Shown one piece after another: positions 1 to 59,360 of a stretch of DNA of 64,000 nt. The stretch spans positions 1-64,000 of the forward strand of contig CDROCS010005192.1 of NCBI GenBank assembly GCA_977020255.1. Reading direction: 5' to 3'. Position numbers and translations under genes: made by a program. Under the pieces are notes generated by a model that was not told the origin of the DNA, searched no databases, and saw nothing but the letters and a program-made list of their open reading frames with translations. Source of the DNA: Obrimoposthia wandeli (taxonomy: Eukaryota). Position 1 is the stretch's first letter. Each line of letters begins with the position of its first letter.

Positions 1-477
1 TGATGAGTTAGTGGCACGGGCAGTGCTGGGTACGACGAAACAGTCATTGCTTGAATTCAGTTTACGCGAGCGCATGGAAAAAGTATTTGAACTAATAGAT
101 CAGGAGTGTGAAAAGCGATTTGGCAGAGTATTGAGGGGGTGACGCACCATTCAGGTTGCATACTTCGAAAGGAAGAACCTGTCATCGAAGAAGAACCTGT
201 AGTCGAAGAAGAACCTGTAGTCGAAGAAGAGCCTGTAGTCGAAGAAGAACCTGTAGTCGAAGAAGAACCTGTAGTCGAAGAAGAACCTGTCATCGAAGAA
301 GAATCCGTCGTCGAAGAAGAACCTGTCATCGAAGAAGAAGCTGTCATCGAAGAAGAAGCTGTCATCGAAGAAGAAGCTGTCATCGAAGAAGAAGCTGTCA
401 TCGAAGAAGAAGCTGTCGTCGCAGAAGAAGCTGTCATCGAAGAAGAAGCTGTCGTCGAAAAAGATGATTCATTATGA
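1..477 (+). CDS. fliH: Flagellar assembly protein FliH, 3' part only (runs off window start; apparent frameshift ~120-170) with long acidic repeat tail
   Basis: Frame from nt 2 reads ...QSLLEFSLRERMEKVFELIDQECEK, resembling the FliH C-terminal helix. Lies directly upstream of fliI. The repeat-frame stop TGA (475-477) overlaps the fliI ATG (474-476) in an ATGA coupling. Confidence 0.6.
169..456 (+). repeat. Coding tandem repeat, 16 x 18 bp (GAAGAAGAA-CCT/GCT-GTC/GTA-ATC/GTC), encoding (E/K/A)EE(P/S/A)V(V/I)
   Basis: Counted from ORF 139..477: 16 hexapeptide units. Pro-type units in the 5' half, Ala-type units in the 3' half. Confidence 0.95.
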
Positions 478-2416: not shown

Positions 2417-2710
2417 ATGTCTGAAGGGCATCAGGTTGAGTGCGGTGAGCGAATGACCATAGAGCAGGTCGAAAGCTTGTACAGCCAGTTAGAAACAGCG
2501 TTGTTAACACACGATAACATCGAGCTTATTGCCGATCGTGTTCAGCAGTGCGATACCGCGTCACTTCAGCTAATCGTAAATCTTATGAAAGCGTCAAAAC
2601 AGCAAGGACCTACTGTGAAATGGGTTAAACCCTCACCGGCGGTTATCAATGTGGCTGAGTTATTAGGCTTAGTTGAAGCGCTAGAATTAACACAACATAT
2701 TACGCAGTAG
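2417..2710 (+). CDS. STAS-domain (anti-sigma antagonist-like) protein at head of chemosensory cluster
   Basis: 97 aa with STAS-like motif DRVQQCDTASLQLIV...PSPAVINVAELLGL, directly upstream of cheY-cheA. Confidence 0.8.
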   Translation: MSEGHQVECGERMTIEQVESLYSQLETALLTHDNIELIADRVQQCDTASLQLIVNLMKASKQQGPTVKWVKPSPAVINVAELLGLVEALELTQHITQ

Positions 2711-2743
2711 AAACTTACGCAGTACAAATAAGGGAGTATGCCA

Positions 2744-3106
2744 ATGGCAACCATTTTGGCGGTTGACGATTCCGCATCGATGCGACAAATGGTCACCTTC
2801 ACCTTAAAAGGTGCAGGCTATGATGTGCAAGAAGCTTGTGATGGTAGTGAAGCTTTAAATATTGCTAAGACGAAAAGATTTGATTTGGTTTTGTCGGATG
2901 TGAACATGCCTATTATGGACGGTATTCAGTTGGTCTCAGAACTGCGTAAATTGAGTGAGTATAAGTTTGTGCCTATTCTTATGCTGACGACTGAGTCGGC
3001 GGGGGATAAAAAAATGGCTGGTAAAAAGGCTGGGGCGACTGGCTGGATTGTTAAGCCATTTAATCCTGACCAGCTATTAAATACCATTAAGAAAGTTTTG
3101 GGTTAA
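2744..3106 (+). CDS. cheY: Chemotaxis response regulator CheY (second, F7/Che2-type system)
   Basis: Single REC domain: VDDS, LSDVNMP, LTTES, KPFNP. RBS AGGGAG favours the ATG at 2744. Confidence 0.9.
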   Translation: MATILAVDDSASMRQMVTFTLKGAGYDVQEACDGSEALNIAKTKRFDLVLSDVNMPIMDGIQLVSELRKLSEYKFVPILMLTTESAGDKKMAGKKAGATGWIVKPFNPDQLLNTIKKVLG

Positions 3107-3111
3107 TTATT

Positions 3112-5273
3112 ATGAGTATCGATCTCTCGCAATTTCATCAGGTTTTCTTCGAAGAAAGTTTCGAAGGCTTAGATATTATGGAATCCAATTTATTAGCACT
3201 GGATTTAACCGAGGTTGATGCTGAAACAATTAACACCATTTTTCGTGCGGCTCACTCCATTAAAGGTGGCGCTGGTACTTTTGGTTTTATGCAAGTCTCT
3301 GGCTTTACACATGTACTGGAAACATTACTCGACGAAATACGCAGTGGCGTTCGTGGAATAGAGCAAGAGCATGTTGATATGCTTTTGCAATGTGTTGATT
3401 GCCTGCGAGGATTGATGAGTGATTTGCAGGCAGGTTCTGAGCCTGATATGACTCAAGCGGATGATTTAAAGAGTAAATTTGAGGCAATTTTAGCCGGTGA
3501 TGCTGCCTCTGTTAGTAATGAGCCAGGGCCCGAAAAAAGGCGGATGATACTATCGCTGACAATCAGTCTTCTGAATCAGGCAGTGATGTAAAGGGCTGGA
3601 AAATTGAATTCATACCTTGTGAGGATGTTTTATGCACGGGCAATGAACCTTATCGCATGTTTCGTGAGTTAAAAGATTTAGCCGATGCAGCAGCAGGGGA
3701 TTTTGAAGTCATTGCGCATTTAGACGCATTGCCTGAATTCTCTAAAATGCTTCCCGAGATGTGTTATTTATCTTGGACGGTGATGGTTCGTGCGGATATT
3801 GAATTATCGGATATTGAAGAGATATTTGAATGGGTGGTTGATGATTGTGATATCCGTTATCAGCGTCTTGCAGACGAGCAGCCTGAGCAAGATATTGAAA
3901 ACCTCCAAACTGAAAATCTAGCCAGCGCCGAAATAACAGACCTACCTAAAGAAACAGAACGTATTGAAAAAACGGAGATTGTTGCAGAAACAATCATTGA
4001 AAAATCAGCGTATGTTGATCCGAGTACGGTAAAAACGGTCCCGAAAGTAGCGGCTAAAGCGGTTTCTAAAGCCGCAGAAAACACCTCTATTCGGGTATCC
4101 ATCGACAAAATCGATGGTTTGATCAACATGGTGGGCGAGCTTGTTATTACCCAATCTATGCTAGGTCAATTAGGCCAAGATTTTGATGTCAGTCGAATCC
4201 AGCGTCTGCAAGAAGGCCTATCTCAGCTTGAACAGAATACTCGCGAGCTACAAGAAAGTGTGATGAAAATTCGCATGCTCCCGATCAGTTTTGCATTCAG
4301 TCGTTTTCCTCGACTGGTTCGTGATCTAAGTAAACAGCTTGATAAAGAAGTCGATTTGGTAATGATCGGTGAAAATACCGAGCTGGATAAAACAGTAATG
4401 GAAAAGATCGGAGATCCACTTGTTCACCTAGTGCGTAACTCGCTTGACCATGGTTTAGAAAGTGCTGAAGAACGCATGAGTAATGGCAAATCCAGTAACG
4501 GCACCATAACACTGAATGCTTATCATCATGGTGGCTCTATTGTTATCGAGGTGAAAGATGATGGCGCGGGTTTAAACAAAGACAGAATCCGTAGTAAAGC
4601 CATTGAAAAAGGCCTAATTGCTGAGGATGAACAGCTTACGGATGGACAAATATACGATCTTATTTTTCAGCCAGGATTTTCAACTGCCGATGTTGTGAGT
4701 GATGTATCAGGTCGTGGAGTAGGGATGGATGTGGTGCGTCGAAATATTGCTGAACTCAATGGTTCTATTGATGTTTCATCGATATCTGGAAAAGGTTCTA
4801 CCTTTTCTATTCGATTACCTTTAACTCTCGCGATTTTAGATGGCCAGTTAGTGAAGGTCGGCGAAGAGGTTTATATTTTCCCATTAGTTTCTATTGTGGA
4901 GTCTATTCAGCTAGAAAAATCTATGCTGAATAATATTACGGGTAATCAATATGTGATGCAGTTGCGTAATGATTATGTCCCTATTATTTGCTTGCAAGAA
5001 ATTTTCAACATCAAGGCAGAAAAGAAAGATCTTGATGGCGCGATGTTGGTGGTCGTTGAAGGCGATAACGGAAAAATAGGCATTGTCGTTGATGAACTAT
5101 TAGGCCAACAGCAGGTTGTAATTAAGAGCCTGGAGAAAAACTACCAGAAAGTTGATTTTATATCAGGTGCCACAATTTTAGGCGATGGCACCGTTGCTTT
5201 AATTGTGGATATCTCGGGTTTACATAATAAGTCGTCAGATAAAAGTTCTGACAATCAAATTCAAGCTGCTTAG
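3112..5273 (+). CDS. cheA: Chemotaxis histidine kinase CheA (second system; frameshift at A-run ~3535)
   Basis: Hpt FRAAHSIKGG, dimerisation LINMVGELVI, HATPase HLVRNSLDHG and GRGVGMDVV, C-terminal CheW domain. The intervening frame reads KGWKIEFIP...GNEPYRMFRE. Confidence 0.95.
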
Positions 5274-5291
5274 AGGAGTAGTGCATGATAA

Positions 5292-5807
5292 ATGCAGCTC
5301 AGCAGAAGTAATGATAATACCGCTGGCAATGAACAGCAGTATTTAACCTTTATTATGGCAGGGGAAGAATATGGAGTTGATATTCTAGCGGTGCAAGAGA
5401 TACGAGGTTGGGAACCAACAACGGTTATTCCAAATGCTCCGAGCTATATAAAAGGCGTTATTAATTTGCGCGGGATCATTGTTCCCATTATGGATCTACG
5501 CAGTCGGTTTAATTTAGAGCGTATTGAATATAGCCCAGTAACGGTGGTTATTATTTTAAAAGTTGAAACTGAACGTGGCGAGCGAGTAATGGGCATTGTA
5601 GTTGATGCTGTGTCGGATGTTCACTCGATCAGAGATTCTGATACCCGTAATAGCCCGGATTTAATTGAAGATTTAAATACTGAATTTATCCGCAGTTTGG
5701 TTTCAGTGGATGACAGTATGATTATTTTATTAGACGTACAGCGTTTATTAACAATCGATAAGCAAATATTAAATTTAGCGGCGGCGGTTGTTGCCGATAA
5801 CGAATAA
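5292..5807 (+). CDS. cheW: Chemotaxis coupling protein CheW
   Basis: QYLTF...YGVDILAVQEIRGW...GVINLRGIIVPIMDLR motifs. Confidence 0.95.
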   Translation: MQLSRSNDNTAGNEQQYLTFIMAGEEYGVDILAVQEIRGWEPTTVIPNAPSYIKGVINLRGIIVPIMDLRSRFNLERIEYSPVTVVIILKVETERGERVMGIVVDAVSDVHSIRDSDTRNSPDLIEDLNTEFIRSLVSVDDSMIILLDVQRLLTIDKQILNLAAAVVADNE

Positions 5808-5846
5808 ACAGCAAATAACAAAATTATGATTAACAGGATGAGAATC

Positions 5847-8781
5847 ATGTCTGAAGAGCAGAGTATGACGCACTGGAAAATTCCAACGCTAACGGTTATG
5901 CCTGCGGTACTGGCATTAGTCTATTTAGCGTTTATGACGGCTAATGCCGGTTTATCGATAGTAATTTCAGTGATCGCTATCGCCTGTTCAATCGTCTTAG
6001 GTTGGTTTCAACTATCGAAACAACAGGGTCTTAGTGATCATGCCATTGAAACAGAGCGCCTGGTGAAAGCACTGGATGTCTGTAATACCAATGTAATGTT
6101 AGCGGATATTAATAATGAGATTTGTTATACCAATAAATCCGTTAATACCATGATGAAAAATGCCGAATCAGCTATTCGAAGTGAACTTCCAGAGTTCAAT
6201 AGTGCGACTTTAATGGGTACTAATATGGATGTTTTCCATAAAGATCCTGCTCATCAGAAAAGCATGGTTGCAAATCTTAGCCAGACTTATAAAACACACA
6301 TTATGGTAGGTGGTCGTACTTTAAGTTTAATTGCTAGGCCGAGTTTTTCAGATGCCGAATCACGCTTAGGCACCGTAGTTGAGTGGTCTGATAAAACCGA
6401 TGAGCTAGCGAAAGAGCATGAAGAGCAACAAGCAGCAAAAGAAAATATTCGTATTCGTAAAGCATTAGATGTGTGTAATACCAATGTGATGATGGCAAAT
6501 GAAAATCTAAATATCACTTATATGAACGAAGCTGTAAAAGAGATGATATTCAGCAGCAGGCTGATTTGAAAGTTGCTTTTTACCGAATTTTAATGCTCAA
6601 AAATTGATGGGCGAAAATGTTGATGTCTTCCATAAAGACCCTTCTCATCAACGAGGGATGTTAGAAAAATTATCGGCTGTTTATAAAGCAACAAATCCGA
6701 GTCGGCGTGCGGTTTCCATTTAGCTTAAACGCCAGCCGAACGGTCAGCGTTTAGGCACGGTAGTTGAGTGGCTTGATAAAACAGAAATGCTCGCACTTGA
6801 AGCAGAAACAGAGCTCAGTGCAAAAGAGAATATTCGTATTCGTAAAGCGTTAGATGTGTGTAATACCAATGTCATGATGGCCGATACTAATCTTGATATT
6901 GTTTATATGAATGATTCTGTTAAAACTATGATGAAAGCCGCAGAGGTGGATCTAAAAGCAGAGCTACCAAGTTTTGATGCTATTAATTTAATCGGCAATA
7001 ATATTGATCAGTTCCATAAAAATCCAGCCCATCAGCGTGGCATGCTCGCCAAGCTTGAGAGTGTATACAAAACTGAAATTCATATCGGCCCACGTACTTT
7101 TAGCTTGATTGCTACCCCCGTATTTAATGACGGTGAACGTTTAGGTACTGCGGTTGAGTGGCTGGATAAAACCGAAACTCTTGCCAAAAAGCGGCAAGAA
7201 AATAATTTCTGATACTAATGCTCGGGTTAAGCAGGCATTGGATTCGGTCACGGGTAATACAATGATCGCGGATAATGATTTTAATATCATTTATATGAAC
7301 GCTGCGGTTCAAGGGATGATGAGTAATGCTCAAGAAGATATACGTAAAGACCTACCTAGTTTTGATGCGAATAATTTGGTGGGGCAAAATATTGATGTCT
7401 TCCATAAAAACCCTTCTCACCAACGTAATTTAGTTGCTTAGGCGGTAGGGACCGTCTCAAAAACACAAAATAAGGAAGTATTGAATTGGGCGAGGACTTT
7501 TGTCTTAATTGCGAATCCGATTGAAAATAAGGAAGGTGAGCGCTTAGGTGCTGTGGTTGAGTGGATGGATCGCACTGATGAAGTCGCCGTTGAAAAAGAA
7601 GTAGATGACTTGGTTCAAGCGGCGGTTAATGGTGATTTATCTCATCGTTTAGAAGTGGCTGGTAAAGAGGGCTTTTTCTTAAGTTTGGCGACGGGCTTAA
7701 ATGATTTAGTGGGTATTGCTGATAATGTGGTTAACGATACTGCACGAGTATTGGATGCTTTAGCTCATGGCCGCTTAACTGAAACGATTACAGCAGATTA
7801 TCAAGGTTCATTTGGTAAATTAAAGCAAGACTCTAATGCCACCGTAGCCAAATTAACAGAAATCATAACGAATATCCGCGAGTCGGCATCGACGGTTTCA
7901 ACCGGTGCCAATGAAATTGCTCAGGGTAACTCTGATTTGAGTCAGCGTACTGAAGCTCAAGCGTCAAACCTTGAGGAGACCGCATCGAGTATGGAAGAAA
8001 TGACCAGTGCGGTGAAGCAGACCAGCGAGAACTCTACTCATGCAACTCAGCTGGCCGTTTCGGCAAGCAAGCAAGCGGCACAAGGCGGAGAGGTGGTTAG
8101 CCGTGCAGTGACCGCGATGGAAGATATCAACCAAGCGAGTAATAAAATTGCCGATATTATCGGCGTGATCGATGAAATTGCTTTTCAGAACAGAATTATT
8201 GGTATTAAACGCAGCAGTAGAGGCAACAAGAGCGAATTGCTTGGGGCAGAGGTTTTGCGGTAGTTGCTGGTGAAGTACGAGGAAATCTTGCTCAGCGTTC
8301 AGCGGGTGCTGCGAAAGAAATTAAAGATCTGATTCGCGATAGTGTAGATAAAGTGAATGCGGGTACGAGTCTGGTTAACGAATCGGGTAAAACGCTAAAA
8401 GATATTGTATCTTCAGTGAAGAGTGTCACCGATATGATTGAAGAGATTAGTATTGCGGCACAAGAGCAGTCATCGGGCATTGAGCAGGTAAACGGTGCCA
8501 TTGCTCAAATGGATGAAATGACACAGCAAAATGCGGCCTTAGTGGAAGAAGCAACTGCGGCAGGTGAAGCGATGGCAGAGCAATCTAGAGGCATGATGAG
8601 CTTGATGGATTTCTTTACCCTAAATAATTCTACCGCCAATATGGCGGGTTATGTTAATAGCCCCTCAATTGCCGCACCTTCAGCCTCTTCTGCCGGCTAG
8701 GTTGCCAGTGAAAAGTCTTCTCACTCTAGCCAAGGCGCTGTGATGAGTGACTCGGCGGATGATGAATGGCAAGAGTTTTAA
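5847..8781 (+). CDS. Aer2/McpB-like chemoreceptor: 2 N-terminal TM helices, four PAS domains, HAMPs, MA signalling domain, C-terminal pentapeptide EWQEF (multiple frameshifts and one in-frame TAG)
   Basis: Four repeats of ALD(V/S)..N.M.A...FHK(D/N)P(A/S)HQ...(G/A)(T/A)(V/A)VEW.D(K/R)T. Signalling domain NLSQRTE-like and [11 protein letters not shown]. Ends DDEWQEF-TAA at 8781, in frame with ORF 8353..8700. Confidence 0.9.
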
Positions 8782-8790
8782 AGGCTGATC

Positions 8791-9641
8791 ATGTCCACAA
8801 CTCATGCAGCGGTAGATTATAGGGAAAAGGAATTCCCTATGACAAATAAAGATTTTGAGCGTATTGCCGCGTTAGCGGGCCGATATACGGGCATTGTTTT
8901 AGGCGAGCATAAACGCGATATGGTTTATGGGCGAATTGCTCGTCGTGTTAGGAAATTACATTTAATGAGTTTTACTCATTATTTGGATTTTCTGGAGGCC
9001 AACTTAGCGCAAGAACTGTCTAGTTTTATTAATGTGATTACTACAAATTTAACATCGTTTTTTCGTGAGAATCATCACTTTAATTTTCTTGAAAAAACAG
9101 TATTGCCCGAGGTACGGAAAAAAAACAGCGTTGCTAAACGTATGCGAATTTGGTCAGCAGGCTGTTCGTCGGGACAAGAACCTTACTCCATTGCCATGAT
9201 ACTAAAGAAATTTTCTATTTCTGCGGATTGGGATGTGAAAATTCTAGCCACAGATCTTGATTCTGATGTACTCGAAAAAGCGAGTCGTGCTGTTTATTCA
9301 AATACGGATATTGATGGCTTGGATGAGTTGACAATAAAAAATTATTTCCAACGAAGTAGTATTAAAAATGAAGTTAAAGTGAAAGTAGAATCTCTGATTA
9401 TGTTCATTTTAAACGATTGAATTTATTGGAAAAATGGCCGATGACAGGGCCGTTTGATTTTATATTTTGCAGAAATGTGGTTATTTATTTTGATAAGCCA
9501 ACACAGAAAATTTTGTTTGATCGCTATGCTGATATGTTACCAATAGGGGGTTATCTCTTTATTGGTCACTCTGAAAATTTACACGGTATTAGTGATCGCT
9601 TCGAGAATCTCGGCAATACTATTTATAGGAAAATACGCTGA
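8791..9641 (+). CDS. cheR: Chemotaxis methyltransferase CheR (frameshift ~9400)
   Basis: TTNLTSFFRE, RIWSAGCSSGQEPYSIAM, ILATDLD, FDFIFCRNVVIYFD. Confidence 0.95.
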
Positions 9642-10304
9642 TGATGGCGTTGGACATAGTTCCACTCATGCGAACAGCCTCCCTTAAGCCCAGAGTTTGA
9701 GCACATAAACCGTTATTGGGACAATCTGCATCATGTCTGGGCGGCTAAAATATTACCGGGAGAATTGTATGTGTCTACCCATGGAGAAATGATTTCAACG
9801 GTATTAGGTTCTTGTATCTCAGTTTGTATTCGCGATAAGAATAAAGGGATTGGTGGCATGAATCATTTTATGCTGCCAAAAAATAATGAATTTTCCAGTG
9901 AGGCTTGGGGAAATAATCCGGCTACTTCGGCCTCTCGTTATGGGAACTGGGCGATGGAGTATTTGATAAATGCTATTTTAAAGCGTGGTGGTGAAAAGAA
10001 AAATTTTGAGGTGAAAGTTTTTGGCGGTGGCCAAATGATGGCAAAAATGACGGATATAGGTCAGCGGAATATAATATTTGTTTATCAATACTTGGCAGAA
10101 GAAATGTTAAAAATTGAAGCCAGTGATGTCGGTGATGTTTTTGCCCGTAAAGTATTATATTTTCCTGATACTGGCAGTGTAAAAGTGAGACGTATTACAA
10201 ATGTTAAAAACGATACTATTATCCGTCGTGAAAATGAGTATAACGAGCTAGTAAAGGTAGCGGGTGCCGCTAAACCTGATTCGAACAATGTCGAGCTATT
10301 TTAG
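9641..10304 (+). CDS. cheD: Chemoreceptor glutamine deamidase CheD (5' part frameshifted)
   Basis: TVLGSCISVC, GGMNHFMLP, VKVFGGG, DVGDVFARKV. An upstream frame reads INRYWD...AAKILPGE. Confidence 0.9.
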
Positions 10305-10312
10305 GAGGGAAT

Positions 10313-11347
10313 ATGGTGAAAACTCGTGTATTAATCATCGATGATTCTGCTCTAATTAGAAAGATGCTAACAGAAATCCTAAGCAGTTGTGATGATATAG
10401 AAGTAGTCGGTACTGCTGCTGATCCATTTATTGCTAGAGAAAAAATTAAATTACTGTCACCTGATGTGCTGACTTTAGATATAGAAATGCCCAAAATGAC
10501 GGGCTTACAATTTTTGCGTAATCTAATGCGTCTACGTCCTATGCCGGTGATTATGGTTTCTACGTTAACTGAGCGTGGCGCTCCTGAAACGTTAGAAGCT
10601 TTAGAGTTGGGTGCTGTGGATTATATTTGCAAACCTAAGGCGCAGACAGAAACTAAACTCAGAATATTTGCAGAGGAGTTAGTTAGCAAGGTTCGGATGG
10701 CCTCCACTGCCAGGGTACAACCGTTTCAACCTAATAAAGTGCGTGTGCCTGTCGCCAAATCAAGCGCTTCTTATTCTAGAGTGATTGCAGTAGGAGCATC
10801 TACTGGAGGTACGGAGGCGATTAAAACATTGTTAACTTCGGTTCCTGACAATTGTCCGCCTATTTTAATTACTCAGCATATTCCCAAAGTATTCAGTACT
10901 TCGTTTGCCGAGCGGCTAGATCGCTATTTGGCGATGGAGGTTTTTGAGGCTCAAGAGGGAATGATAATTCGCCCAGGTTGCGTTTATATTGCTCCTGGAG
11001 ATTATCATTTAACCGTCGCGAGGTCGGGCACAAAAATGGTTTGCCATATCATTCAAACAGAAAAGGTGAATCGTCACCGACCGGCTGTTGATGTGATGTT
11101 TAATTCGGTGCAGGGGTTTCAAAAGTGGTTGCCGTTATCCTAACGGGGATGGGCAATGACTTGCGGCGCTGCGGTATGCTCCGAGCCAAGCAAGCTTGAG
11201 GGGGAGGCAACTACCTATGCCCAAGATGAAGCGACATCGGTGGTTTGGGGGATGCCTCAAGCGGCCTATAATCTTGGCGCGGTTGATGAAGTGCTTCCAT
11301 TGCAAAAAATTACTGAAAAAATGTTGCGATCAGCGCAAAATAAATGA
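10313..11347 (+). CDS. cheB: Chemotaxis methylesterase CheB (second system; frameshifts ~11110-11200)
   Basis: REC domain plus GASTGG, QHIP, RPAVD, shifted VAVILTGMGND, and AQDEATSVVWGMP. Confidence 0.95.
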
Positions 11348-11700: not shown

Positions 11701-13367
11701 GTGACCAAAATGAAGATCTTAATTGCTGACGATAATGCTTCAGATAGATTGTTATTAAGTAAAATTATCAGCAAACAAGGCCATGAGGTTATTCAGGCAG
11801 AAAATGGTAAACATGCCATTGACTGTTATGTAAAAGAAGCTCCTGACATTATTCTGATGGACGTTCTCATGCCTGTGCTTGATGGCAAGGGCGCCGCCAA
11901 AGAAATCAAACGCATTGCCGGCGAAGATTTAATCCCCATTATCATTTAACTCTAGCGTTGTTCGCAAAGCCTGAAACTGATTGCTTGCTTAGAGGCAGGT
12001 TGGCGATCAGTTGTTTTTAACCAAGCCTTATAATCCCATTATTCTTAAAGCCAAAATCGATGCTTTTGTACGTATGCGTAATATGCATGCGATTTTGCAA
12101 AAACAGCGCGATACCATTGCTGAGAATAATCAGCACATGGTGCAGGCATCATCGCAAAAGCGGTGTTTAAGATATTAAATATATGCTTATCGCTTTGGCG
12201 GTGTTGTGGTGAAGCCTTCCGGCGGTATGCACGTGCTCCTAGGTGATTTTACGGGGCACGGTTTACCACCGCGATACTTCATAAGTGGCCGAAATATTTT
12301 TATGAGGCCCATGACCGCGAAGGGTTTTGGTCTGCGTAATATTCTGCAAGAAATTAATTCAAAACTTAAATGTTTACATGGTTTTGCTGCGGTTGTCGAT
12401 TTAAGTTTCACCAAACGCAGTATTAGTATCTGGATGGGTGGTGTGCCTGATTGTTATTTATTAAGTGAACATGGCACTAAACTTAAATCGATACGTTCTC
12501 AGCACTTGCCTTTAGGAGTATTAAGCAGTGTGCAGTTTGATGATGAAATGACGGTGCATTCAATGGATGTTGAGGATCGCTTATTTATGTGGTCGGATGG
12601 CATTGTTGAAGCTAGGGATGGCGGTGGCAATATGTTTGGAGAGGAGCGCTTAAAAGCTTGATCTTTGAATTAAAAGGCATTTAACCCAGAGCTATTATTT
12701 GAAGCGGTTAAAGAGAGTGTTAGTGCTTTTGTTGGCGATACGGAAAGAGATGATTGTGCAATTATTGAGCTAGAAATGGTAGAAGAGGCAGTAGGCAATC
12801 GGGGAGTTTAGTCTCTCATCACGGGAGGCCGCTGACAGCTCCTAGTGATTGGAAAATAGAATATGAATTGGGCGTTGATTCATTAAAGAATTTCAATCCA
12901 TTGCCTTTGGTTATGCACATTTTATTATGATGGGGTTCCACATTAAGAGATCGATGGGGGGGGGCAACTGACTAGTCGTATCTGGTGTTTTCCTAATGAG
13001 CACGGACTGCTTAGTGGGATTCGAAGCCCAAATCAGCTTGGCCGGCTTTGCTGAGTTTTATACCTTACGTGAACAGCATTTGAACAATTTGAGCGCGGGA
13101 TTTATCAAAATTAAAATGGCTCATACTTCAGAAAATGGACGCTCGGGTATTTTTCTGCTGTGTATTGAAGACAGTGGTAAGGGGTTTGATTACTCACAAA
13201 TCTCTACTCAAAACCAATTGAAGATTGATAGCAAAGCCGAAGGCGCGAATAAGTACTGTGGTCGCGGTATACCTTTAATTCATTCATTATGTCATTCATT
13301 AGAGTACATGGGGTGTGGTAATAACGTAGTCGCAGAGATACACTGGCCGCAGAAAAATACTGTGTAG
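11701..13367 (+). CDS. Response regulator with REC + PP2C phosphatase + HATPase (anti-sigma kinase) domains, HsbR-like (several frameshifts)
   Basis: REC (IADDN, LMDVLMP), PP2C (LGDFTGHG, HLPLG, MWSDGIVEA..FGEERL), HATPase (IEDSGKGFD, YCGRGIPLI). Confidence 0.85.
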
Positions 13368-13383: not shown

Positions 13384-13728
13384 TTGGACAGAACATCTCA
13401 TTTTGATACTGAAGCACTCGCGATGCTAGAAGAAATTATGGAAGATGATTTTCCTGAATTAATCCAGGTATTTATCGCCGATTCCGATCCTAGAGTGCCT
13501 GCTATACAGAGCGCGTTAGATGAAAAAAATAGCGTTATGTTAAGAGATATTGCACACAGTTTTAAAGGGGCTTCGAGTAATTTATCGGCACTACCTTTGG
13601 CGGATATCTGTTTTAAAATAGAAGAAAAAGCACGGGATGCTAATTTTGAAGGCATTCAATCGTTAATCGCGGCGACTGATACTGAATATCAAGCGGTTAA
13701 ATCTATATTGTTATCTCTTATCAAATAA
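13384..13728 (+). CDS. Stand-alone histidine phosphotransfer protein, HptB-like
   Basis: Hpt motif LRDIAHSFKGASSNL; follows the HsbR-like gene and precedes fliK. Confidence 0.88.
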   Translation: MDRTSHFDTEALAMLEEIMEDDFPELIQVFIADSDPRVPAIQSALDEKNSVMLRDIAHSFKGASSNLSALPLADICFKIEEKARDANFEGIQSLIAATDTEYQAVKSILLSLIK

Positions 13729-13795: not shown

Positions 13796-15166
13796 ATGGA
13801 AACTCAACCAACTCAAAACAGCTTAATGCAAATTTTCACCAGTCTAGGCTTGGCTACGAATAATTCGTTAACAGCTCTGGAAGGTGAAAACCCAGAGGGT
13901 AAAGGCTTTGCGAGCTTACTATCAGGTTACCTTCCGAACGGGGCAGATGATGGGCTGACTGGCATAGACTCTAATTTACTTCCCTCGCAGGTGGCGACGA
14001 ATACTGATTTAGCAGCAGTAGATACTGCCTCTTTAATGGATGAAAGTTTGCCGCTATTAGGACAAGCTTTGCCGCTAGAGCAGATTGCTTCACCACTGGC
14101 AGTGATAAATCCTTTAACCGCTGAACAAGCTGCTACTGTTCCAACATCAGGACTAGCAGAAAGGGCCTCTTATAAAACTCCTCTCACTCCTGCCCTTAGC
14201 AAGGTTGATGAAAGTGATTCTACTGACAGTGATGCATCGACTCAGGCATTAGCAGATCAAGGCTTTTATGCTCAATCTTTAGTTTCTAGCTTAATCGGTA
14301 ACGCTGCTGGGATAAAAATGAATGCGGTAGAAACTACTAATAATTCTCTGCCATTAGTTGATGACTCACTTAAAGCTGTTCATGTGATGCCGCAGCAAGT
14401 CAATAATGGTATTAATTCACAGAACTTAACGGCTAGTGAATTGGATGAAATGAGTGATGAGGCAACTGATCGCTTTCTTGGCGCAGAGCCCGCATTGAAT
14501 GCATCAAAACCTAAAAAATTAGCCGGACTTGAAGTATTTCCCACCCCACAGGCTAGCGTACCGCTAACTACCCTCAATCCAAGTGCGGTGGAGGCTAGTG
14601 TGAGCCTAGCCCTTGCCCTAAACGAAGACCCAACGACTCAATCTTTGGATGAAATGATTGATGGTGAGGTGATCGAGAAAAGTGAAGCTGAAGCAAAGCT
14701 CACAACCTTAGAGCGTAAGCAAGATGATCAAACGTTAAAGTTATCTAAGGGTCAGCAGGCTTGGGGGGAAGCATTAACTGAGCGTATTACGATGAATGCG
14801 GCCAAAGATATTAAGCAGGTTACGATTCATCTAGATCCTCCTGAGTTGGGCAGCTTAGAGCTGAAATTGCAGGTGAAAGAAGATCAGCAAACTCATGTGC
14901 ATGTTCAGGTTCATAATCCACAAGTTAAGGAGGCATTAGAAAGCAGTGCCCATCGCTTACGTGAGATGCTTGCTAACCAAGGATTAGAACTTTCCGAATT
15001 CGATGTGCAAACAGACTCCGGCAGGGGTGAGCAGTCAGCATTTGGTGCTAATGAGCAAGGCCAAGGACAATCACAAGATTCTGACGCTTCTGACAATTCA
15101 GCGGAAGAAATCAGTGTAGAAATCCCGAAAGCAAAAAATAATAACTTATTAGATACCTTTGTCTAA
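13796..15166 (+). CDS. fliK: Flagellar hook-length control protein FliK
   Basis: Low-complexity N-terminus plus T3S4 domain (VTIHLDPPELGSLEL...LREMLANQGLEL). GGAG RBS before ATG 13796; alternative start 13784. Confidence 0.9.
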   Translation: METQPTQNSLMQIFTSLGLATNNSLTALEGENPEGKGFASLLSGYLPNGADDGLTGIDSNLLPSQVATNTDLAAVDTASLMDESLPLLGQALPLEQIASPLAVINPLTAEQAATVPTSGLAERASYKTPLTPALSKVDESDSTDSDASTQALADQGFYAQSLVSSLIGNAAGIKMNAVETTNNSLPLVDDSLKAVHVMPQQVNNGINSQNLTASELDEMSDEATDRFLGAEPALNASKPKKLAGLEVFPTPQASVPLTTLNPSAVEASVSLALALNEDPTTQSLDEMIDGEVIEKSEAEAKLTTLERKQDDQTLKLSKGQQAWGEALTERITMNAAKDIKQVTIHLDPPELGSLELKLQVKEDQQTHVHVQVHNPQVKEALESSAHRLREMLANQGLELSEFDVQTDSGRGEQSAFGANEQGQGQSQDSDASDNSAEEISVEIPKAKNNNLLDTFV

Positions 15167-52584: not shown

Positions 52585-55500
52585 ATGGCAGCTTGGCAGT
52601 TTTGGATGGATCGTGGCGGTACCTTTACCGATATCGTGGCGAAGAAGCCTGACGGCAGTTTGGTGACTCATAAGCTGTTATCAGAAAATCCTGCCCATTA
52701 TAAAGACGCTGCTATTCAAGGCATTCGTGAATTGCTCGGTTTGTCTGATGACCAGGCTTTGCCGATCGAGTTAATCGATGAGGTTAAAATGGGCACCACC
52801 GTTGCAACCAATGCGCTATTAGAACGTAAAGGTGAGCCAACGTTATTAGTCACCAGTCATGGCTTGGGTGATGTCTTAAAAATCGGTTATCAAACACGCC
52901 CCGATATTTTTGCCTTAGATATTCGCTTACCCGAACAGTTGTATGTAGGGGTTGAGGAAGCGAGTGAACGCTTACTGGCTGACGGTACGATTGATCGACC
53001 GTTTGACGAAGAAGGCTTAGCGGTACGTTTAATTGAATGGCGAAAGCAAGGTATTGAATCCATCGCCATTGCCTTTGCTCATGGTTATCGTTTTCCTGAA
53101 CATGAAAAGGCGGCTGGACGCTTGGCGCGTGAATTAGGGTTTAAACAAGTCTCACTAAGTCATGAAGTTAGCCCGTTAGTGAAGTTGGTGCCGCGCGGCG
53201 ATACCACGGTTGTGGATGCGTATTTATCGCCAATTTTAAAACGTTATGTTGAGCAAGTAGACGATCAACTTTCATCTGCTAAACAGAAAGTCCCGTTGTA
53301 TTTTATGCAATCTAACGGTGGTTTAGTCGACGCGCATAAGTTTCGTGGCAAAGATGCCATTCTATCTGGCCCCGCAGGTGGGGTAGTCGGCATGGTTGAA
53401 ACGGCGAGTGATGACGGTTTCGATCGTATTATCGGTTTTGATATGGGCGGCACGTCGACGGATGTCGCGCATTTTAATAACGAGCCATCTTTACTTCAGA
53501 GTCTTCTAAAGAAAAAGCCTTGCGAGAATACGAACGTGAGTTTGAAACTCAGGTAGCCGGAGTTCGCTTACGTGCGCCGATGATGAATATTCATACGGTC
53601 GCGGCGGGTGGCGGTTCAATTGTGAAATTCTCAGATGGCCGTTTTCAAGTGGGTCCAGAAAGTGCGGGGGCTTTTCCTGGGCCTGCGTGTTATCGCAATG
53701 GTGGTCCTCTTACGATTACCGATTGTAATGTGCTGCTAGGCAAGGTGAAGGCGGAATATTTTCCTGAATGTTTTGGTCCCAAGCGTAATCAAGGTTTGGA
53801 TTATGTCGGTGTTAAGCAGCAGTTCGAAGCGCTCGCCGAAAAAATTAATAGTGAATCGAATGCACACTATTCAGCGGCAGAAATAGCCCAAGGGTTCTTA
53901 ACCATCGCCATTGAAAATATGGCCAACGCCGTGAAGAAAATTTCACTGCAACGTGGTTATGATGTTAGCAACTATGTCTTAAATGCTTTTGGTGGCGCGG
54001 GTGGTCAGCATGCGTGTTTAGTGGCTGAATCATTAGGCATGAAACAGGTGTATTTACATCCTTTTGCGGGGGTTTTATCCGCTTATGGTATTGGTCTGGC
54101 GAATGAACGTTGGTTAGGGGAAGAGTCGTTACAATTAGAGATTTTTAATAGCGATCCATCGAATGCTAACTCAGTGCAAGTACTCAGGTCTTGTGAGGTA
54201 TTGGATGAAATAGAATTATGCCAACTACGTTTGCAGCAGAAGGCCAGCACCTCAATTTCTAGAGCGGCGAATGGCAAGGCTTCAGGCTCTAATACTAAAC
54301 AAAAAATTCAAGATTTCTGGCGCATTCATATTAAATATAAAGGCACGGATACACCGCTTTTATTGCAGCTGCCGAATAATTTAGATTTAGCGAAAGTGGC
54401 AGTCGAGTTTCATCAATTGCATCAGCAAACGTTTGGTTTTTCTGATGCTAAGCGCCCCCTAGTACTGGAAGCGATACAGCTAGAACGTGTTGCTGGTGGT
54501 CGCGATGTTAAAGGAGATAATGAGAGTGAAGATGGCAAAGAACAGCGCAAAGAACAGGTTTCTGGTCATGGCGTATTAAAGGCGATTGCTCATAGTGACA
54601 TGACCTGTGCAGTCAACAGTCATCGCGAAAATAACGGTAAGACTGAAACTAAAACACAGCAAGTCCCTGTGTATCGTCGAGAGCAGCTGCCACACAATAT
54701 TGATATTAAAGGCCCAGCATTAATCGCTGAAAATAACTCGACCATCGTGATTGAACCAAACTGGGTGGGTAAGGTAATCGCCAGCGGGGCTTTGGTTTTA
54801 ACCTATCAAGACGATAAAAATCACCAAAATAAGACGCGTCAAAGCGCAGTAGATGTGTCGACTCCTGATGCGATTCAGCTAGAAGTGTTCAACAATTTAT
54901 TCATGTTTGTCGCCGAGCAAATGGGTTTTGTTTTAGAAAAAACAGCCGCAAGTGTGAATATCAAAGAACGTCTAGATTTTTCTTGTGCCTTGTTTGATAA
55001 GCAGGGTGAGCTGGTGGCGAATGCGCCGCATATTCCTGTGCATTTAGGTTCAATGAGCGAGAGCATTAAAGTAGTTATAAACAATAACCCAAATATGAAA
55101 GCGGGTGATGCCTTTGTATTAAATACGCCTTATAACGGCGGTACGCATTTACCGGATATCACGATTGTTAAACCTGTCTTTATAAATTCTAACGCTGAAA
55201 ATACGAATGATGACAATACAGCGGCGGACTTTTACGTTGCTGCTCGGGGTCATCACGCTGATGTCGGCGGTATTACTCCGGGTTCAATGCCAGCCCGTAG
55301 CCAGCATATTAATGAAGAAGGTATTTTATTAGATAATTTATGCTTGGTGAAAGAAGGCGAATTTCAAACGGCGATGATTACTCAAGCCTTGTCTGATCAT
55401 GAATTCCCCGCGCGTAATATCGAACAAAATATTGCCGATTTAAAAGCACAATTGGCCGCCTGTGAAAAAGGCGCGCAAGAATTAAATCGCTTAAGTCATC

Positions 55501-56501
55501 AATACGGTTTAGCAACCCTGCAGGCGTATATGGGGCACGTACAAGATAACGCCGAAGTTACGTTGCAAGCCTGTTTAAAAGAATTAGATTCAGGTTCGTT
55601 TGAATACGCGATGGATGATGGTAGCTTAATTAAGGTTGCCATTACGATTGATAAAGAGGGTGATAAAAAGGGGGATAAAGAGAGCGGTAAAGAAAACTGC
55701 CGCGCTAAAGTCGATTTCACCGGTACCTCGCCTCAACATGTCGGCAATTTTAATGCGCCCACCTCCGTTGCCAAAGCGGCGGTCTTGTATGTCTTTCGTT
55801 GCCTCGTCGCTAAATCCATGCCACTGAACGCAGGCTTTTTCCGCGCGCTGGATATCATAGTGCCAGAAGGCTCTATGCTAGCGCCGCAATATCCTGCGGC
55901 GGTGGTTTCGGGAAATGTTGAAACGGCTCAATATATCGTAGATACCTTATTGGGTGCGCTAGGCATTATGGCCGCGAGCCAAGGTACCAATAATAATTTC
56001 ACTTTTGGCGATGATGAATTTCAGTATTACGAAACGCTGTGTGGCGGTGCAGGAGCAACTCAAAGCAATGCGGGTGCTTCTGGCGTGCACAGTCATATGA
56101 CCAATTCACGGCTAACCGATGTGGAAATATTAGAGCAGCGTTTTCCGGTGATGTTAGAACACTTTGCTATTCGACCTTGTTCGGGTGGTACTGGGGAACA
56201 TAAAGGCGGCGATGGCATCGAACGCCATATACGATTTTTGAAAGCGATGTCTGCGACCATTATTTCAGGTCATCGACACGTACCAACGTTTGGTATGGCA
56301 GGCGGTGAATCGGGCAAGGTAGGGATGAATTTCGTCCAGCGTTTTGTGCTGGATTCCACGGGGGCGCCAGTGCCTAAGCTTGAATTCCTTAAAGGTTGCA
56401 CCGATATACAGATGAATAGAGGGGATGTGTTTTGTATTCATACCCCAGGAGGCGGTGGTTATGGTCGCTCGTTAGATATAGGGCTTGATAAAGATCAATA
56501 G
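52585..56501 (+). CDS. Fused hydantoinase A/B 5-oxoprolinase (ATP-hydrolysing) family protein; one frameshift ~53490
   Basis: DRGGTFTD, GTTVATNALLERKG, DMGGTSTDV, TVAAGGGS, NIKERLDFSC, HIPVHLG, YYETLCGG, TPGGGGYG. One added T at ctt(t)cag joins both ORFs. Confidence 0.92.
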
Positions 56502-57144: not shown

Positions 57145-57187
57145 GTGTAGGATGTGCTCAAATTATTTAAATAAGAGAATTCATAAG

Positions 57188-59360
57188 ATGAAGAATCTAT
57201 TTGTTGTATCTCTAGCCCTAGTAGCAGGCATCGCGCAAGCGGCTGATGACCAAGTTATCGACAAGAAAGTTACTGATAATACGGCTCACCAGCTTTCTAC
57301 CGTGAGTATCATTGGTAGCGAAGAAGAGGCTCAGCAAATTGCAGGTTCTGCCCATGTTATCGATTCAGAAGAACTAGCAAAATTTGAATATACCGATATT
57401 CAGAAAGTTCTAGCGGGTGTTCCAGGTGTATCTTTCCGTAATGAAGAGGGCTACGGCTTACGTCCTAATATCAGTATTCGTGGTACGCGTGATGATCGCT
57501 CTGGCAAAATCACATTAATGGAAGACGGTGTATTAATCGCTCCAGCGCCTTACTCTGCTTCATCTGCGTATTATTTTCCAACGGCTGGTCGCATTAGCGG
57601 CGTTGAAGTTATGAAAGGCGCATCGGCTATTAAGAACGGTCCTTATACCGTTGGCGGTGCATTAAACCTAATCAGTACGCCTATTCCTTATGAGTTATCA
57701 GGTAAAACAAACCTAGAATACGGTAGTGATAATACCGTACGTGCATACGGTGCTGTTGGTGATAGCAAAGAAAATTATGGTTGGTTAATAGAAGGTCAAA
57801 AGCATCAAAGTGATGGTTTTGATAGCATTCAAAATGCGGCTGACGATACCGGCTTTGATAAAGAAGACGTAATGGCTAAATTCCGTGTGAATTCAGATCG
57901 CGGCGCAGCTGTTTATAACCAGCTTGATTTAAAACTGCAGTATTCTACCGAACTTTCTGATCAGACATACGTTGGGCTTACCGAAGCAGACTTTAATAAT
58001 GATGCACATGAACGTTATGGTCTGACTCAGCAAGACGAAATGGATAACGAGCATAAAGAAATTACCTTGAGTCACTTAGTTGAATTCGGTACGACTGAAA
58101 TCATCACAACCGGTTACTTTATCGAATTCAAACGTGATTGGTTTAAGGTTGATAAGATCGGTGGCGATAGCATCAATAGCGTGATTGATTGTGCGAATAC
58201 TGGCAATTGTGGTTCAAACGATATCAGAAGCGGATGCTATCGCGGTACATGGCGAGCAAGCCGGCTGCGATATCAAACATAATAACCGTAGCTATGAATC
58301 AAAAGGTATTCAGACTCGCGTTAAGCATCAGTTAGAAACTGCCAGTATCGATCATGGTATTGAATTTGGTTTACGTTACCACGAAGATAGTGAAGATCGT
58401 GATCAGCCAACTGAAACATGGGCGCAAGATGCTAATGGTAACCTTACGTATGTCTCAACAGGAGCTCCAAGCACTCGTTTAACAAAAGCTAAAGCTTGGT
58501 CTGCTTACCTTTCTGATGATATGAAATTAGGCCAATGGGTTGTCAGCCCTGGTGTACGTCATGAAAACTACGAAATAAAGCGTGAAGGAAGTGATACTAA
58601 GGTAACTGAGCAAAACGTAACGCTCTTTGGTTTAGGAGCAACTTATCAAATCAATCAGCAGGTGCTTATGTTCGCGGGTACGCATGAGGGCCATTCACCA
58701 GCGCCAAACGATGGTAAGAGTGATCCAGAAAAAGCTTTGAACTCTGAATTTGGCCTACGTTTTAATGATGCAGGTTTATATGCAGAAGCGACGGCATTCT
58801 ATAGTGATTACTCTAACCTAGTGGGGGTTTGTTCAGCCTCGGGTGGTGCGGGAGACTGTGATATTGGTGACGCAAGCAATGCGGGTGAAGCAACGATTCA
58901 AGGTTTGGAAACATTAGTAAAATATGAGCATGCTTTAAATTCTGTGATTACTTTGCCTATTGGCATTACCTATACCTATACCGATGCGACGTTTGATACT
59001 ACTTTTGAAGATGACGGTGTTTGGGGAAGTGTAGAAAAAGGCGATAAGTTACCTAATTTAGCCGATCAGCAAATTCAGTTACGATTGGGGATGGTTCATG
59101 TATCCGGATTTGCTGCTGATATGAACGTTAACTATTATAGCGAAACTTGCTCAACCGCTGCTTGTGGCACAAATGAAGAGGTTGATGCTTATAGTATTGT
59201 TGATCTTGCAGGACGCTATCAAATAAACAGCCAGACTCGTGTTTATGCAACAGTAGAAAACGTTTTCAATAGTGATGATGTGGTTGCTCGTGCGCCTAAA
59301 AATGGTGCTCGCGCTCAGAAGCCTCTTTCTATGTTGATGGGTGTTTCTTATAACTTCTAA
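57188..59360 (+). CDS. TonB-dependent outer-membrane receptor (FecA-like family); one frameshift ~58215
   Basis: Signal peptide; plug motifs GVSF..EEGYGLRPNISIRG and IEV.KG-type VEVMKG; C-terminal VYATVENVFN...GVSYNF. Confidence 0.9.

Follow-up and report, generated by a model that had tools for sequence, protein, structure and literature searches.

The gene at 5847-8781 on the plus strand of the 64,000-nt stretch analysed here (the window) probably encodes an Aer2/McpB-type receptor from the Che2 (F7) cluster of chemosensory genes in an Oleispira-like gammaproteobacterium, with an N-terminal membrane hairpin, four tandem PAS-heme units, a HAMP region, a signalling domain and a C-terminal pentapeptide, and with the mechanism proposed below; the copy in the window is repeatedly interrupted. 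Aer2 is a model for in-line gas signalling, in which signals pass from tandem PAS-heme domains to HAMP and kinase-control modules. As reference we used an intact 983-aa ortholog (L001:9998-12949; 88% nucleotide identity to the window gene), the intact protein in close relatives being 975-983 aa long. Pfam matches on the neighbouring genes gave the cluster order cheY-cheA-cheW-aer2-cheR-cheD-cheB, which is identical in L001 (Table 1). As a separate observation, this Oleispira-like bacterial contig was found within an animal genome assembly.

Table 1 Features of the receptor gene and its chemosensory cluster, in window coordinates.
Feature	Position	Strand	Basis or remark
cheY	2738-3106	+	F7 cluster
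cheA	3112-5273	+	F7 cluster; frameshift near 3538
cheW	5292-5807	+	F7 cluster; cheY to cheW block, 2738-5807
aer2/mcpB-type chemoreceptor gene	5847-8781	+	Interrupted: compared with the 983-aa ortholog, 13 indels and two TAG stops in frame
Transmembrane helix 1 (predicted)	5880-5942	+	Residues 12-32; Kyte-Doolittle hydropathy, AlphaFold helix in ortholog
Transmembrane helix 2 (predicted)	5952-6014	+	Residues 36-56; hydropathy, AlphaFold model of ortholog
PAS-heme unit 1, class A	6048-6398	+	Uninterrupted; His codon 6237-6239, Trp codon 6384-6386
PAS-heme unit 2, class B	6438-6783	+	Disrupted; His codon 6631-6633, Trp codon 6769-6771
PAS-heme unit 3, class C	6823-7173	+	Uninterrupted; His codon 7015-7017, Trp codon 7159-7161
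Two 1-nt deletions, PAS3-PAS4 linker	7189-7197	+	Alignment to ortholog
PAS-heme unit 4, class D, adjoining HAMP	7214-7576	+	Disrupted; His codon 7403-7405, Trp codon 7562-7564
HAMP_2 (PF18947) match	7667-7849	+	Pfam; in the HAMP region 3' of PAS4
MCP signalling domain (PF00015)	8048-8523	+	Pfam; split by indels in the conserved hairpin tip
3-nt deletion and in-frame TAG, C-terminal linker	8693-8700	+	Alignment to ortholog
EWQEF C-terminal pentapeptide, CheR-tether type	8764-8778	+	Followed by TAA at 8779-8781
cheR	8791-9641	+	Frameshift near 9381
cheD	about 9666-10304	+	Two 1-nt deletions close to the start
cheB	10313-11347	+	Interrupted near 11115-11196; cheR to cheB block, 8791-11347

As judged by sequence comparison, each of the four units is homologous to a solved Aer2 PAS-heme domain and keeps the Eeta-His, Gbeta-Tyr, Hbeta-Leu and Ibeta-Trp residues together with the DxT coupling motif. 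PAS1 and PAS3 matched the P. aeruginosa Aer2 PAS-heme structures 3VOL/4HI4 (E 1e-33 and 1e-37, respectively), the VcAer2 structure 6CEQ was matched at E 1e-15, and in the alignments PaAer2 H234, L264 and W283 fall on the heme His, the Hbeta-Leu and the O2 Trp, all of which upholds the Aer2-type identity proposed in a first-pass annotation of this DNA. The FHK(D/N)P(A/S)HQ motif and VEW Trp that the annotation had read in every repeat are indeed present in 4/4 units: FHKDPAHQ at 6234, FHKDPSHQ at 6628, FHKNPAHQ at 7012 and FHKNPSHQ at 7400, and, with the pattern (V/A)VEWxD(K/R)T, VVEWSDKT at 6375, VVEWLDKT at 6760, AVEWLDKT at 7150 and VVEWMDRT at 7553. Among ortholog units, Trp and DxT were found in 77/77, Leu at His+30 in 75/75 and His in 75/77 (the motif search missed the other two). 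The units have a period of 130 residues, are 52-73% identical among themselves and form four orthologous classes, A-B-C-D.

N-terminal to the PAS array, hydropathy computed on the products P0121/P0122, whose N-terminus is identical to that of the window protein, and on orthologs revealed two hydrophobic 19-residue segments with Kyte-Doolittle values of 2.0-2.4 inside residues 12-56; the predicted helices (Table 1) are separated by a 3-residue loop (NAG), in agreement with the earlier reading of two hydrophobic helices with a near-zero periplasmic loop. With this predicted anchor on an otherwise cytoplasmic multi-PAS receptor, the protein fits a membrane-bound, LiAer2-like Aer2. An AlphaFold model of ortholog residues 1-720 contains a helical hairpin and four PAS folds (pLDDT about 80-89), with inter-PAS helices at 192-216, 322-347 and 452-476 and further helices after PAS4 at 583-600, 615-646 and 661-719; in this model, the second transmembrane helix is predicted to continue as a single helix into the PAS1 N-cap.

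Downstream of the array, the HAMP, signalling domain and pentapeptide expected from the first pass were all recovered (HAMP_2 and MCPsignal Pfam matches, EWQEF). Aer2 receptors carry a di-HAMP unit from the last PAS to a kinase-control module of the 36H class; in this region the ortholog has one HAMP_2 match, at residues 615-674, and the window piece has a weak HAMP match besides. Ortholog residues 629-962 align to positions 211-547 of NCBIfam PRK15048 (MCP II), lengths of 334 and 337, and E. coli Tar belongs to the 36H class. The tail EWQEF fits the CheR-tethering pentapeptide motif x-[HFYW]-x2-[HFYW] (PMC7184735).

The four PAS-heme units had been described as apparently intact, a description that did not survive alignment to the ortholog. 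Against L001:9998-12949, the window gene carries 13 indels (at 6549, 6558, 6577, 6693, 6713, 6738, 7189, 7197, 7450, 8189, 8237, 8279 and 8693) and in-frame TAG stops at 7439-7441 and 8698-8700, with repeated changes of frame. PAS2 contains six of the indels, 6549-6738, the last a 10-nt deletion; PAS4 contains the first TAG and a 12-nt insertion (7450-7461) in a scrambled patch; and the hairpin tip of the signalling domain contains insertions of 1 nt at 8189, 1 nt at 8237 and 3 nt at 8279. The disrupted parts are thus PAS2, PAS4, the hairpin tip and the C-terminal linker, and among the PAS units only PAS1 and PAS3 are uninterrupted; as assembled, the gene lacks the continuous reading frame by which a functional copy in this genome would be recognized. 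In the PAS3-PAS4 linker, a contig of the same-sample set X1 retains the G behind position 7188. Since 75% of aer2 substitutions relative to the ortholog fall at codon position 3, and 217 codons changed synonymously versus 80 nonsynonymously, purifying selection has acted on the gene.

The roughly 15 interruptions are, in our assessment, somewhat more likely than not to reflect a garbled stretch of mixed-strain assembly, while true gene decay is a substantial possibility that we hold to be somewhat short of even. Between 0 and 17.4 kb the reading frames of fliI, fliJ, cheA, cheR, cheB, fliM and an hsbR-like gene are all interrupted, and the next 18 kb of flagellar and che genes have no frame-breaking indel. 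The aer2 lesions are scrambled, non-homopolymer patches, one of them in the most conserved MCP motif; a run from the same sample contains at least two other strains, with adjacent blocks of the window matching different ones; and in L003, another Oleispira metagenome-assembled genome (MAG), the corresponding PAS array contains Ns and shifts of frame. An alternative interpretation is that the pathway was lost in this strain, the hsbR-like output gene decaying first and aer2, cheA2, cheR2 and cheB2 thereafter. Lesion density is very uneven, with about 40 events in the hsbR-like gene versus one in cheA, and the codon pattern of the hsbR-like gene is relaxed (52% of substitutions at position 3, at a natural transition/transversion ratio (ts/tv) of 1.7), which together resemble real decay; deletions of 10-34 nt, and the larger size and higher frequency of deletions than of insertions in the hsbR-like gene, point the same way. 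The other 46 kb of the window are largely clean, so that the assembly is not uniformly poor, and single frameshifts occur elsewhere in an oxoprolinase gene (near 53.5 kb) and a TonB-dependent receptor gene (near 58.2 kb). However, most aer2 substitutions are still synonymous, the scrambled patches lie where sequence is repeated or, at the MCP tip, shared among paralogs, and the relatives are free-living, with intact copies in at least ten sequences of one cluster. Moreover, fliI, with an amino-acid identity of 95-97%, falls into three frames, and fliM is broken too, whereas the neighbouring flhA, flhB, fliP-R, flhF, fleN, fliA and F6 che genes are without frame-breaking indels; the lesions follow position rather than function.

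Substitution spectra did not separate error from evolution, the ts/tv being 1.9 near indels (a natural ratio) versus 1.5 elsewhere. The X1 contigs have low depth and belong to strains other than that of the window; not one of them bridges 6408-6695 or follows the window's strain through the lesion sites. A search for a closer relative that could reveal the correct letters of the scrambled patches found nothing nearer than L001/P0004. Exact look-up of two window products, the 240-aa aer2 fragment and CheW, returned no record, and the broken reading frame is therefore without an independent copy. Read noise at the contig end was also considered for the 16 gaps that blastn showed in the first 460 nt, and was rejected because direct alignment traced these gaps to differing copy numbers of a tandem 18-nt repeat that lies within the gene upstream. 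It is highly improbable that the count of four is itself a product of repeat expansion or collapse during assembly: contigs do break in the repeats, one X1 contig jumping from 6354 to 7540, and the Ns of L003 lie within its PAS array, but the units are only 52-73% identical to one another and fall into four orthologous classes, and an unbroken A-B-C-D order recurs in L001, in L002 and across many independent clusters. We caution against any inference of gene loss from the first 17 kb of the window without the source reads.

Published Aer2 work covers receptors with one to three PAS units, and no receptor with more than three was found in the literature. The statement in the first-pass annotation that P. 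aeruginosa Aer2 has one unit, that of V. cholerae two and that of V. vulnificus three, all soluble, agrees with PMC10107281 and PMC13401364 (a 2026 review), as does its mention of a membrane-bound form in Leptospira, which is described there as membrane-embedded with three units. The Vibrio proteins (VvAer2, tri-PAS-heme; VcAer2, dual, PDB 6CEQ) resemble the window receptor in the tandem PAS-heme units at their N-terminus (Eeta-His and Ibeta-Trp present), DxT helical linkers, HAMP after the last PAS, kinase-control module, xWxEF tail and F7 cluster, but they are soluble and have two or three units, whereas the window receptor has four units and an N-terminal membrane hairpin. The intact ortholog scored 815.7 bits against the Vibrio Aer2 model NCBIfam NF041847, best over the last PAS, HAMP and signalling core; as the cut-off is 1200, it is a relative rather than an equivalog. 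PaAer2/McpB (3VOL, 4HI4) has in common with the window receptor the PAS unit, closely similar FHK(D/N)PAHQ motifs, an EWQEF-type tether and the Che2 cluster order, from which the window receptor departs in its transmembrane hairpin, its four PAS units and its lack of N-terminal HAMPs. Leptospira interrogans Aer2 (LiAer2), as described in PMC10107281, belongs to a spirochete and has three PAS-heme units, in contrast to the four of this gammaproteobacterial receptor.

The suggestion that the architecture was undescribed holds for the literature, in which no characterisation was found, but not for the databases, where it is common; the cooperative or wide-range O2 sensing proposed along with it is a hypothesis. 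Among the best 120 protein clusters, 31 have two transmembrane helices and four units, 12 have two helices and five units and two have two helices and six units; some clusters have three units and some up to seven. Cultured genomes supply Marinobacter mobilis WP_217634530.1 (four units, with a period of 127 aa), Shewanella woodyi ACA84465.1 (five), S. violacea CAM3403637.1 (six) and S. psychrophila AQS35467.1 (seven), all with two transmembrane helices, and proteins from Oleispira MAGs have three to six. The Oleispira protein MFT4907622.1 is an intact ortholog with four units. These relatives share with the window receptor the transmembrane hairpin, the period (130 aa, Marinobacter excepted) and the xWxEF tail, and differ from it in unit number alone, the extra units being duplicates of a single class (B). 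Their database annotations go no further than methyl-accepting chemotaxis protein, and no study of the Marinobacter, Shewanella or Oleispira relatives was found in the literature. The receptor with two transmembrane helices and four units is uncharacterised, not unknown.

The intact protein is probably a homodimeric methyl-accepting chemotaxis protein that the N-terminal two-helix hairpin anchors to the inner membrane on its cytoplasmic side, with essentially no periplasmic part. The second helix leads into four in-line PAS units, spaced at the 130-residue period with helices of about 25 residues between them; the HAMP region comes next, then a kinase-control module similar in length to that of E. 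coli (36H-like), and finally the EWQEF tail. By analogy with VcAer2 and VvAer2, every unit would bind b-type heme and O2, the last (class D) unit driving the HAMP and control of CheA2 and the upstream units modulating class D. CheR2 would dock on EWQEF, CheB2 and CheD would adapt the receptor, and output would pass through CheY2 and adjacent STAS, response-regulator-phosphatase and Hpt genes rather than to the flagellar motor. LiAer2 shows that domains of this kind may have hexacoordinate heme and may invert the sign of the signal (PMC10107281 and PMC13401364), and for this reason the analogy may fail in detail.

We consider it unlikely that some of the units are something other than O2 sensors, whether hexacoordinate heme domains, detectors of redox state, NO or CO, or spacers whose role is purely structural and fixes how long the receptor is. 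PAS1 of VvAer2 is largely dispensable and easily oxidised, the units of LiAer2 are hexacoordinate (PMC10107281), and variation from three to seven units among close relatives through duplication of class B alone suggests weak constraint on unit number. However, His, Tyr, Leu, Trp and DxT are kept in all classes across the 77 units examined, at the motif-search frequencies given above, which is unexpected for a mere spacer.

Rather speculatively, array length in cold and deep-sea gammaproteobacteria (Oleispira, Shewanella, Marinobacter) might change rapidly by exactly 130 residues at a time, chiefly as one internal class is duplicated or lost, such that unit number tunes either the O2 response, in its set point, range or cooperativity, or the distance at which the F7 array stands from the membrane. 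Density layers in cryo-electron tomography, with a reported spacing of 5-6 nm, suggest that F7 array height tracks PAS number (PMC7184735). The relatives constitute a natural series of three to seven units on a common membrane anchor and a conserved heme pocket, in which close relatives stand one 130-residue unit apart; this series is a ready set of constructs for asking whether extra PAS-heme units act as modulators, integrators or spacers, and it would test whether PAS number sets the height of the F7 array.

Six-frame translation of positions 5800–8800 revealed a single long receptor-like protein dispersed across three forward frames, and translation combined with Pfam searches bore out the first-pass annotation of a membrane hairpin, four repeats with His and Trp motifs, HAMP, a signalling domain and a terminal pentapeptide. 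The genes cheY, cheA and cheW lie upstream of this Aer2-type receptor gene (aer2), and cheR, cheD and cheB downstream (Pfam), which is the Che2/F7 order of P. aeruginosa and V. cholerae; the F7 cluster sits between fliJ and fliK. Domain order, homology, conserved heme-pocket residues, cluster context and the tether motif are established for the receptor.

Features of aer2, its lesions relative to the closest relative's locus (L001) and other genes in the window
Feature	Position	Strand	Remarks
18-nt tandem repeat	150-470		Encodes E-E-P-V-V-E-like units; 3' end of gene upstream of fliI; copy number unequal between window and L001
STAS anti-sigma antagonist gene	2417-2710		Flanks F7 cluster
Receptor start ATG	5847	+
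Membrane hairpin (predicted)	residues 12-32 and 36-56	+	Counted from ATG 5847; 3-residue spacer NAG
PAS repeats (n = 4)		+	Each with FHK(D/N)P(A/S)HQ and (V/A)VEWxD(K/R)T
His codons of four repeats	6237, 6631, 7015, 7403	+
Trp codons of four repeats	6384, 6769, 7159, 7562	+
HAMP_2 and MCPsignal		+	Pfam matches
C-terminal EWQEF	8764-8778	+	Followed by TAA
Indels +1, -2, +2	6549-6577		Versus L001
Indels +1, +3, -10	6693-6738		Versus L001
Indels -1, -1	7189, 7197		Versus L001
Indel +12	7450		Versus L001
Indels +1, +1, +3	8189-8279		Versus L001
Indel -3	8693		Versus L001
In-frame TAG stops (n = 2)	7439, 8698		In aer2
Response-regulator/PP2C gene, hsbR/crsR-like	11701-13367		577 aa; flanks F7 cluster; most damaged gene of region (~40 indels, 69-83% amino-acid identity; 52% of substitutions at codon position 3)
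Hpt gene	13384-13728		Flanks F7 cluster
Split oxoprolinase/hydantoinase gene	52585-56501		Hydantoinase_A profile interrupted at position 100; outside damaged 17 kb
Split TonB-dependent receptor gene	57152-59360		Plug and barrel frames differ; outside damaged 17 kb

PAS1 and PAS3 matched the solved PAS-heme domain of P. aeruginosa Aer2 (PaAer2; 3VOL, 4HI4) with E values of 1e-33 and 1e-37, respectively, and V. cholerae Aer2 (VcAer2; 6CEQ) at 1e-12 to 1e-15, and the His, Leu and Trp of both units align with PaAer2 H234, L264 and W283. Across 77 units from 19 Oleispira-type orthologs, the Eeta-His, second His, Gbeta-Tyr, Hbeta-Leu, Ibeta-Trp and DxT showed zero substitutions wherever the motif was located. 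An AlphaFold model of ortholog residues 1–720 (mean pLDDT 78) comprises a helical hairpin whose second helix runs into the PAS1 N-cap, four PAS folds (pLDDT ~80–89) separated by ~25-residue helices, and HAMP-like helices past the last PAS. Against the NCBIfam Vibrio Aer2 model the ortholog scored 815.7 bits, under the equivalog cut-off of 1200, and the best-matching stretch was the last PAS, HAMP and signalling core.

The proposal that the architecture is undescribed does not hold if read as rarity. A word-indexed search with residues 1–600 of the intact ortholog scored 6649 proteins at E ≤ 1e-10, and units and N-terminal hydrophobic segments were counted in the top 120 clusters: two N-terminal TM segments precede three PAS-heme units in 27 clusters, four in 31, five in 12 and six in 2, forms reaching seven units are also included, and xWxEF is the C-terminus of almost every protein. 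The two-TM, multi-unit architecture is also encoded in complete genomes of cultured organisms, namely those of Marinobacter mobilis (WP_217634530.1, four units), Shewanella woodyi (ACA84465.1, five), S. violacea (CAM3403637.1, six) and S. psychrophila (AQS35467.1, seven). Units recur every 130 residues exactly, or every 127 in Marinobacter.

In a maximum-likelihood tree the units fall into four classes, A-B-C-D from the N-terminus, and four-unit proteins, the window's included, read A-B-C-D. Oleispira proteins with five or six units carry additional B copies that are 88–92% identical to one another, while proteins with three units read either A-B-D or A-C-D. The class adjoining HAMP, D, diverges most, in agreement with the published view of the last PAS, di-HAMP and kinase-control module as the conserved core (PMC10107281). 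Unit number among close relatives changes in exact 130-aa steps (loci L001, L002 and L004; proteins P0001–P0158), ranging from 3 to 6 in Oleispira and from 4 to 7 among the Shewanella violacea, psychrophila and woodyi relatives; certain Shewanella entries apparently begin downstream of the TM hairpin, possibly owing to start-codon calls.

The closest relative found, an Oleispira MAG (L001; 88% nucleotide identity to aer2), has one unbroken 983-aa ORF with identical architecture in the same cluster, and global alignment against it places 13 indels in aer2, mostly in short scrambled patches away from homopolymers. The lesions fall in the C-terminal linker and, in the signalling domain, in the conserved hairpin tip; of the four units initially taken as apparently intact, they affect PAS2 and PAS4 and leave PAS1 and PAS3 lesion-free.

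We consider these breaks to be probably an assembly artefact. Relative to L001, 75% of aer2 substitutions lie at codon position 3 (217 synonymous versus 80 nonsynonymous codons), a pattern comparable to cheA, cheW and cheB; outside the scrambled patches aer2 therefore looks to be under selection, which favours an artefact. So does the regional nature of the breakage, since breaks occur between 0 and 17.4 kb in fliI (three frames), fliJ, cheA, cheR, cheB, the hsbR/crsR-like regulator gene and fliM, whereas alignment to relatives shows no frame-breaking indel in the flagellar and F6 che genes over the next 18 kb. The source assembly is moreover an animal genome with numerous marine bacterial contigs, and in Oleispira MAG NORP219 the same PAS array carries many N letters and frame changes (L003:10800-11260), which marks the array as a general assembly trouble spot. 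Real decay is nevertheless a realistic possibility, because the region contains 10–34 nt deletions, lesion density is highly uneven (~40 events in the hsbR-like gene versus one in cheA), the codon-position pattern of the hsbR-like gene is relaxed and its ts/tv ratio natural, and isolated frameshifts occur elsewhere, in the oxoprolinase (~53.5 kb) and TonB receptor (~58.2 kb) genes.

Contigs of a sequencing run from the window's own sample (X1) contain an L001-like strain at ~3x depth and a second strain at ~8x. The window equals the former at 5812–5962 and the latter at 6045–6334 and is elsewhere unlike both, and this matching of two strains in different blocks, a further point on the side of an artefact, suggests a mixed-strain consensus or natural recombinant; no X1 contig covers 6408–6695. 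Identity to L001 of 99–100% at 5750–6043, 14000–14500 and 4500–4750, against a background of 81–89%, suggests that co-occurring strains recombined or that the consensus is chimeric.

Published Aer2 receptors have one (P. aeruginosa), two (V. cholerae) or three PAS domains (V. vulnificus, VvAer2, and the membrane-embedded receptor of Leptospira interrogans; PMC10107281; July 2026 review PMC13401364), and our literature search found no paper on receptors with at least four units or on Oleispira Aer2; thus, aer2 belongs to a known receptor family, as a variant that is common yet uncharacterised. The first-pass annotation read the receptor kind correctly; the copy here is broken as given in assembly GCA_977020255.1. 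By analogy with VcAer2 and VvAer2 (PMC10107281), every unit would bind b-type heme, O2 binding would displace the Hbeta-Leu and recruit the Ibeta-Trp, and the change would be relayed via the DxT loop and connecting helix; the last unit would control HAMP and hence CheA2, upstream units would modulate the last, and the pentapeptide may be bound by CheR2 (PMC7184735). In S. oneidensis, the che1 locus includes a CrsA/CrsR partner switch that controls RpoS (PMC9855816). The STAS, response-regulator/PP2C and Hpt genes beside the F7 cluster are similar to that switch, which makes an output other than motility plausible for the cluster.
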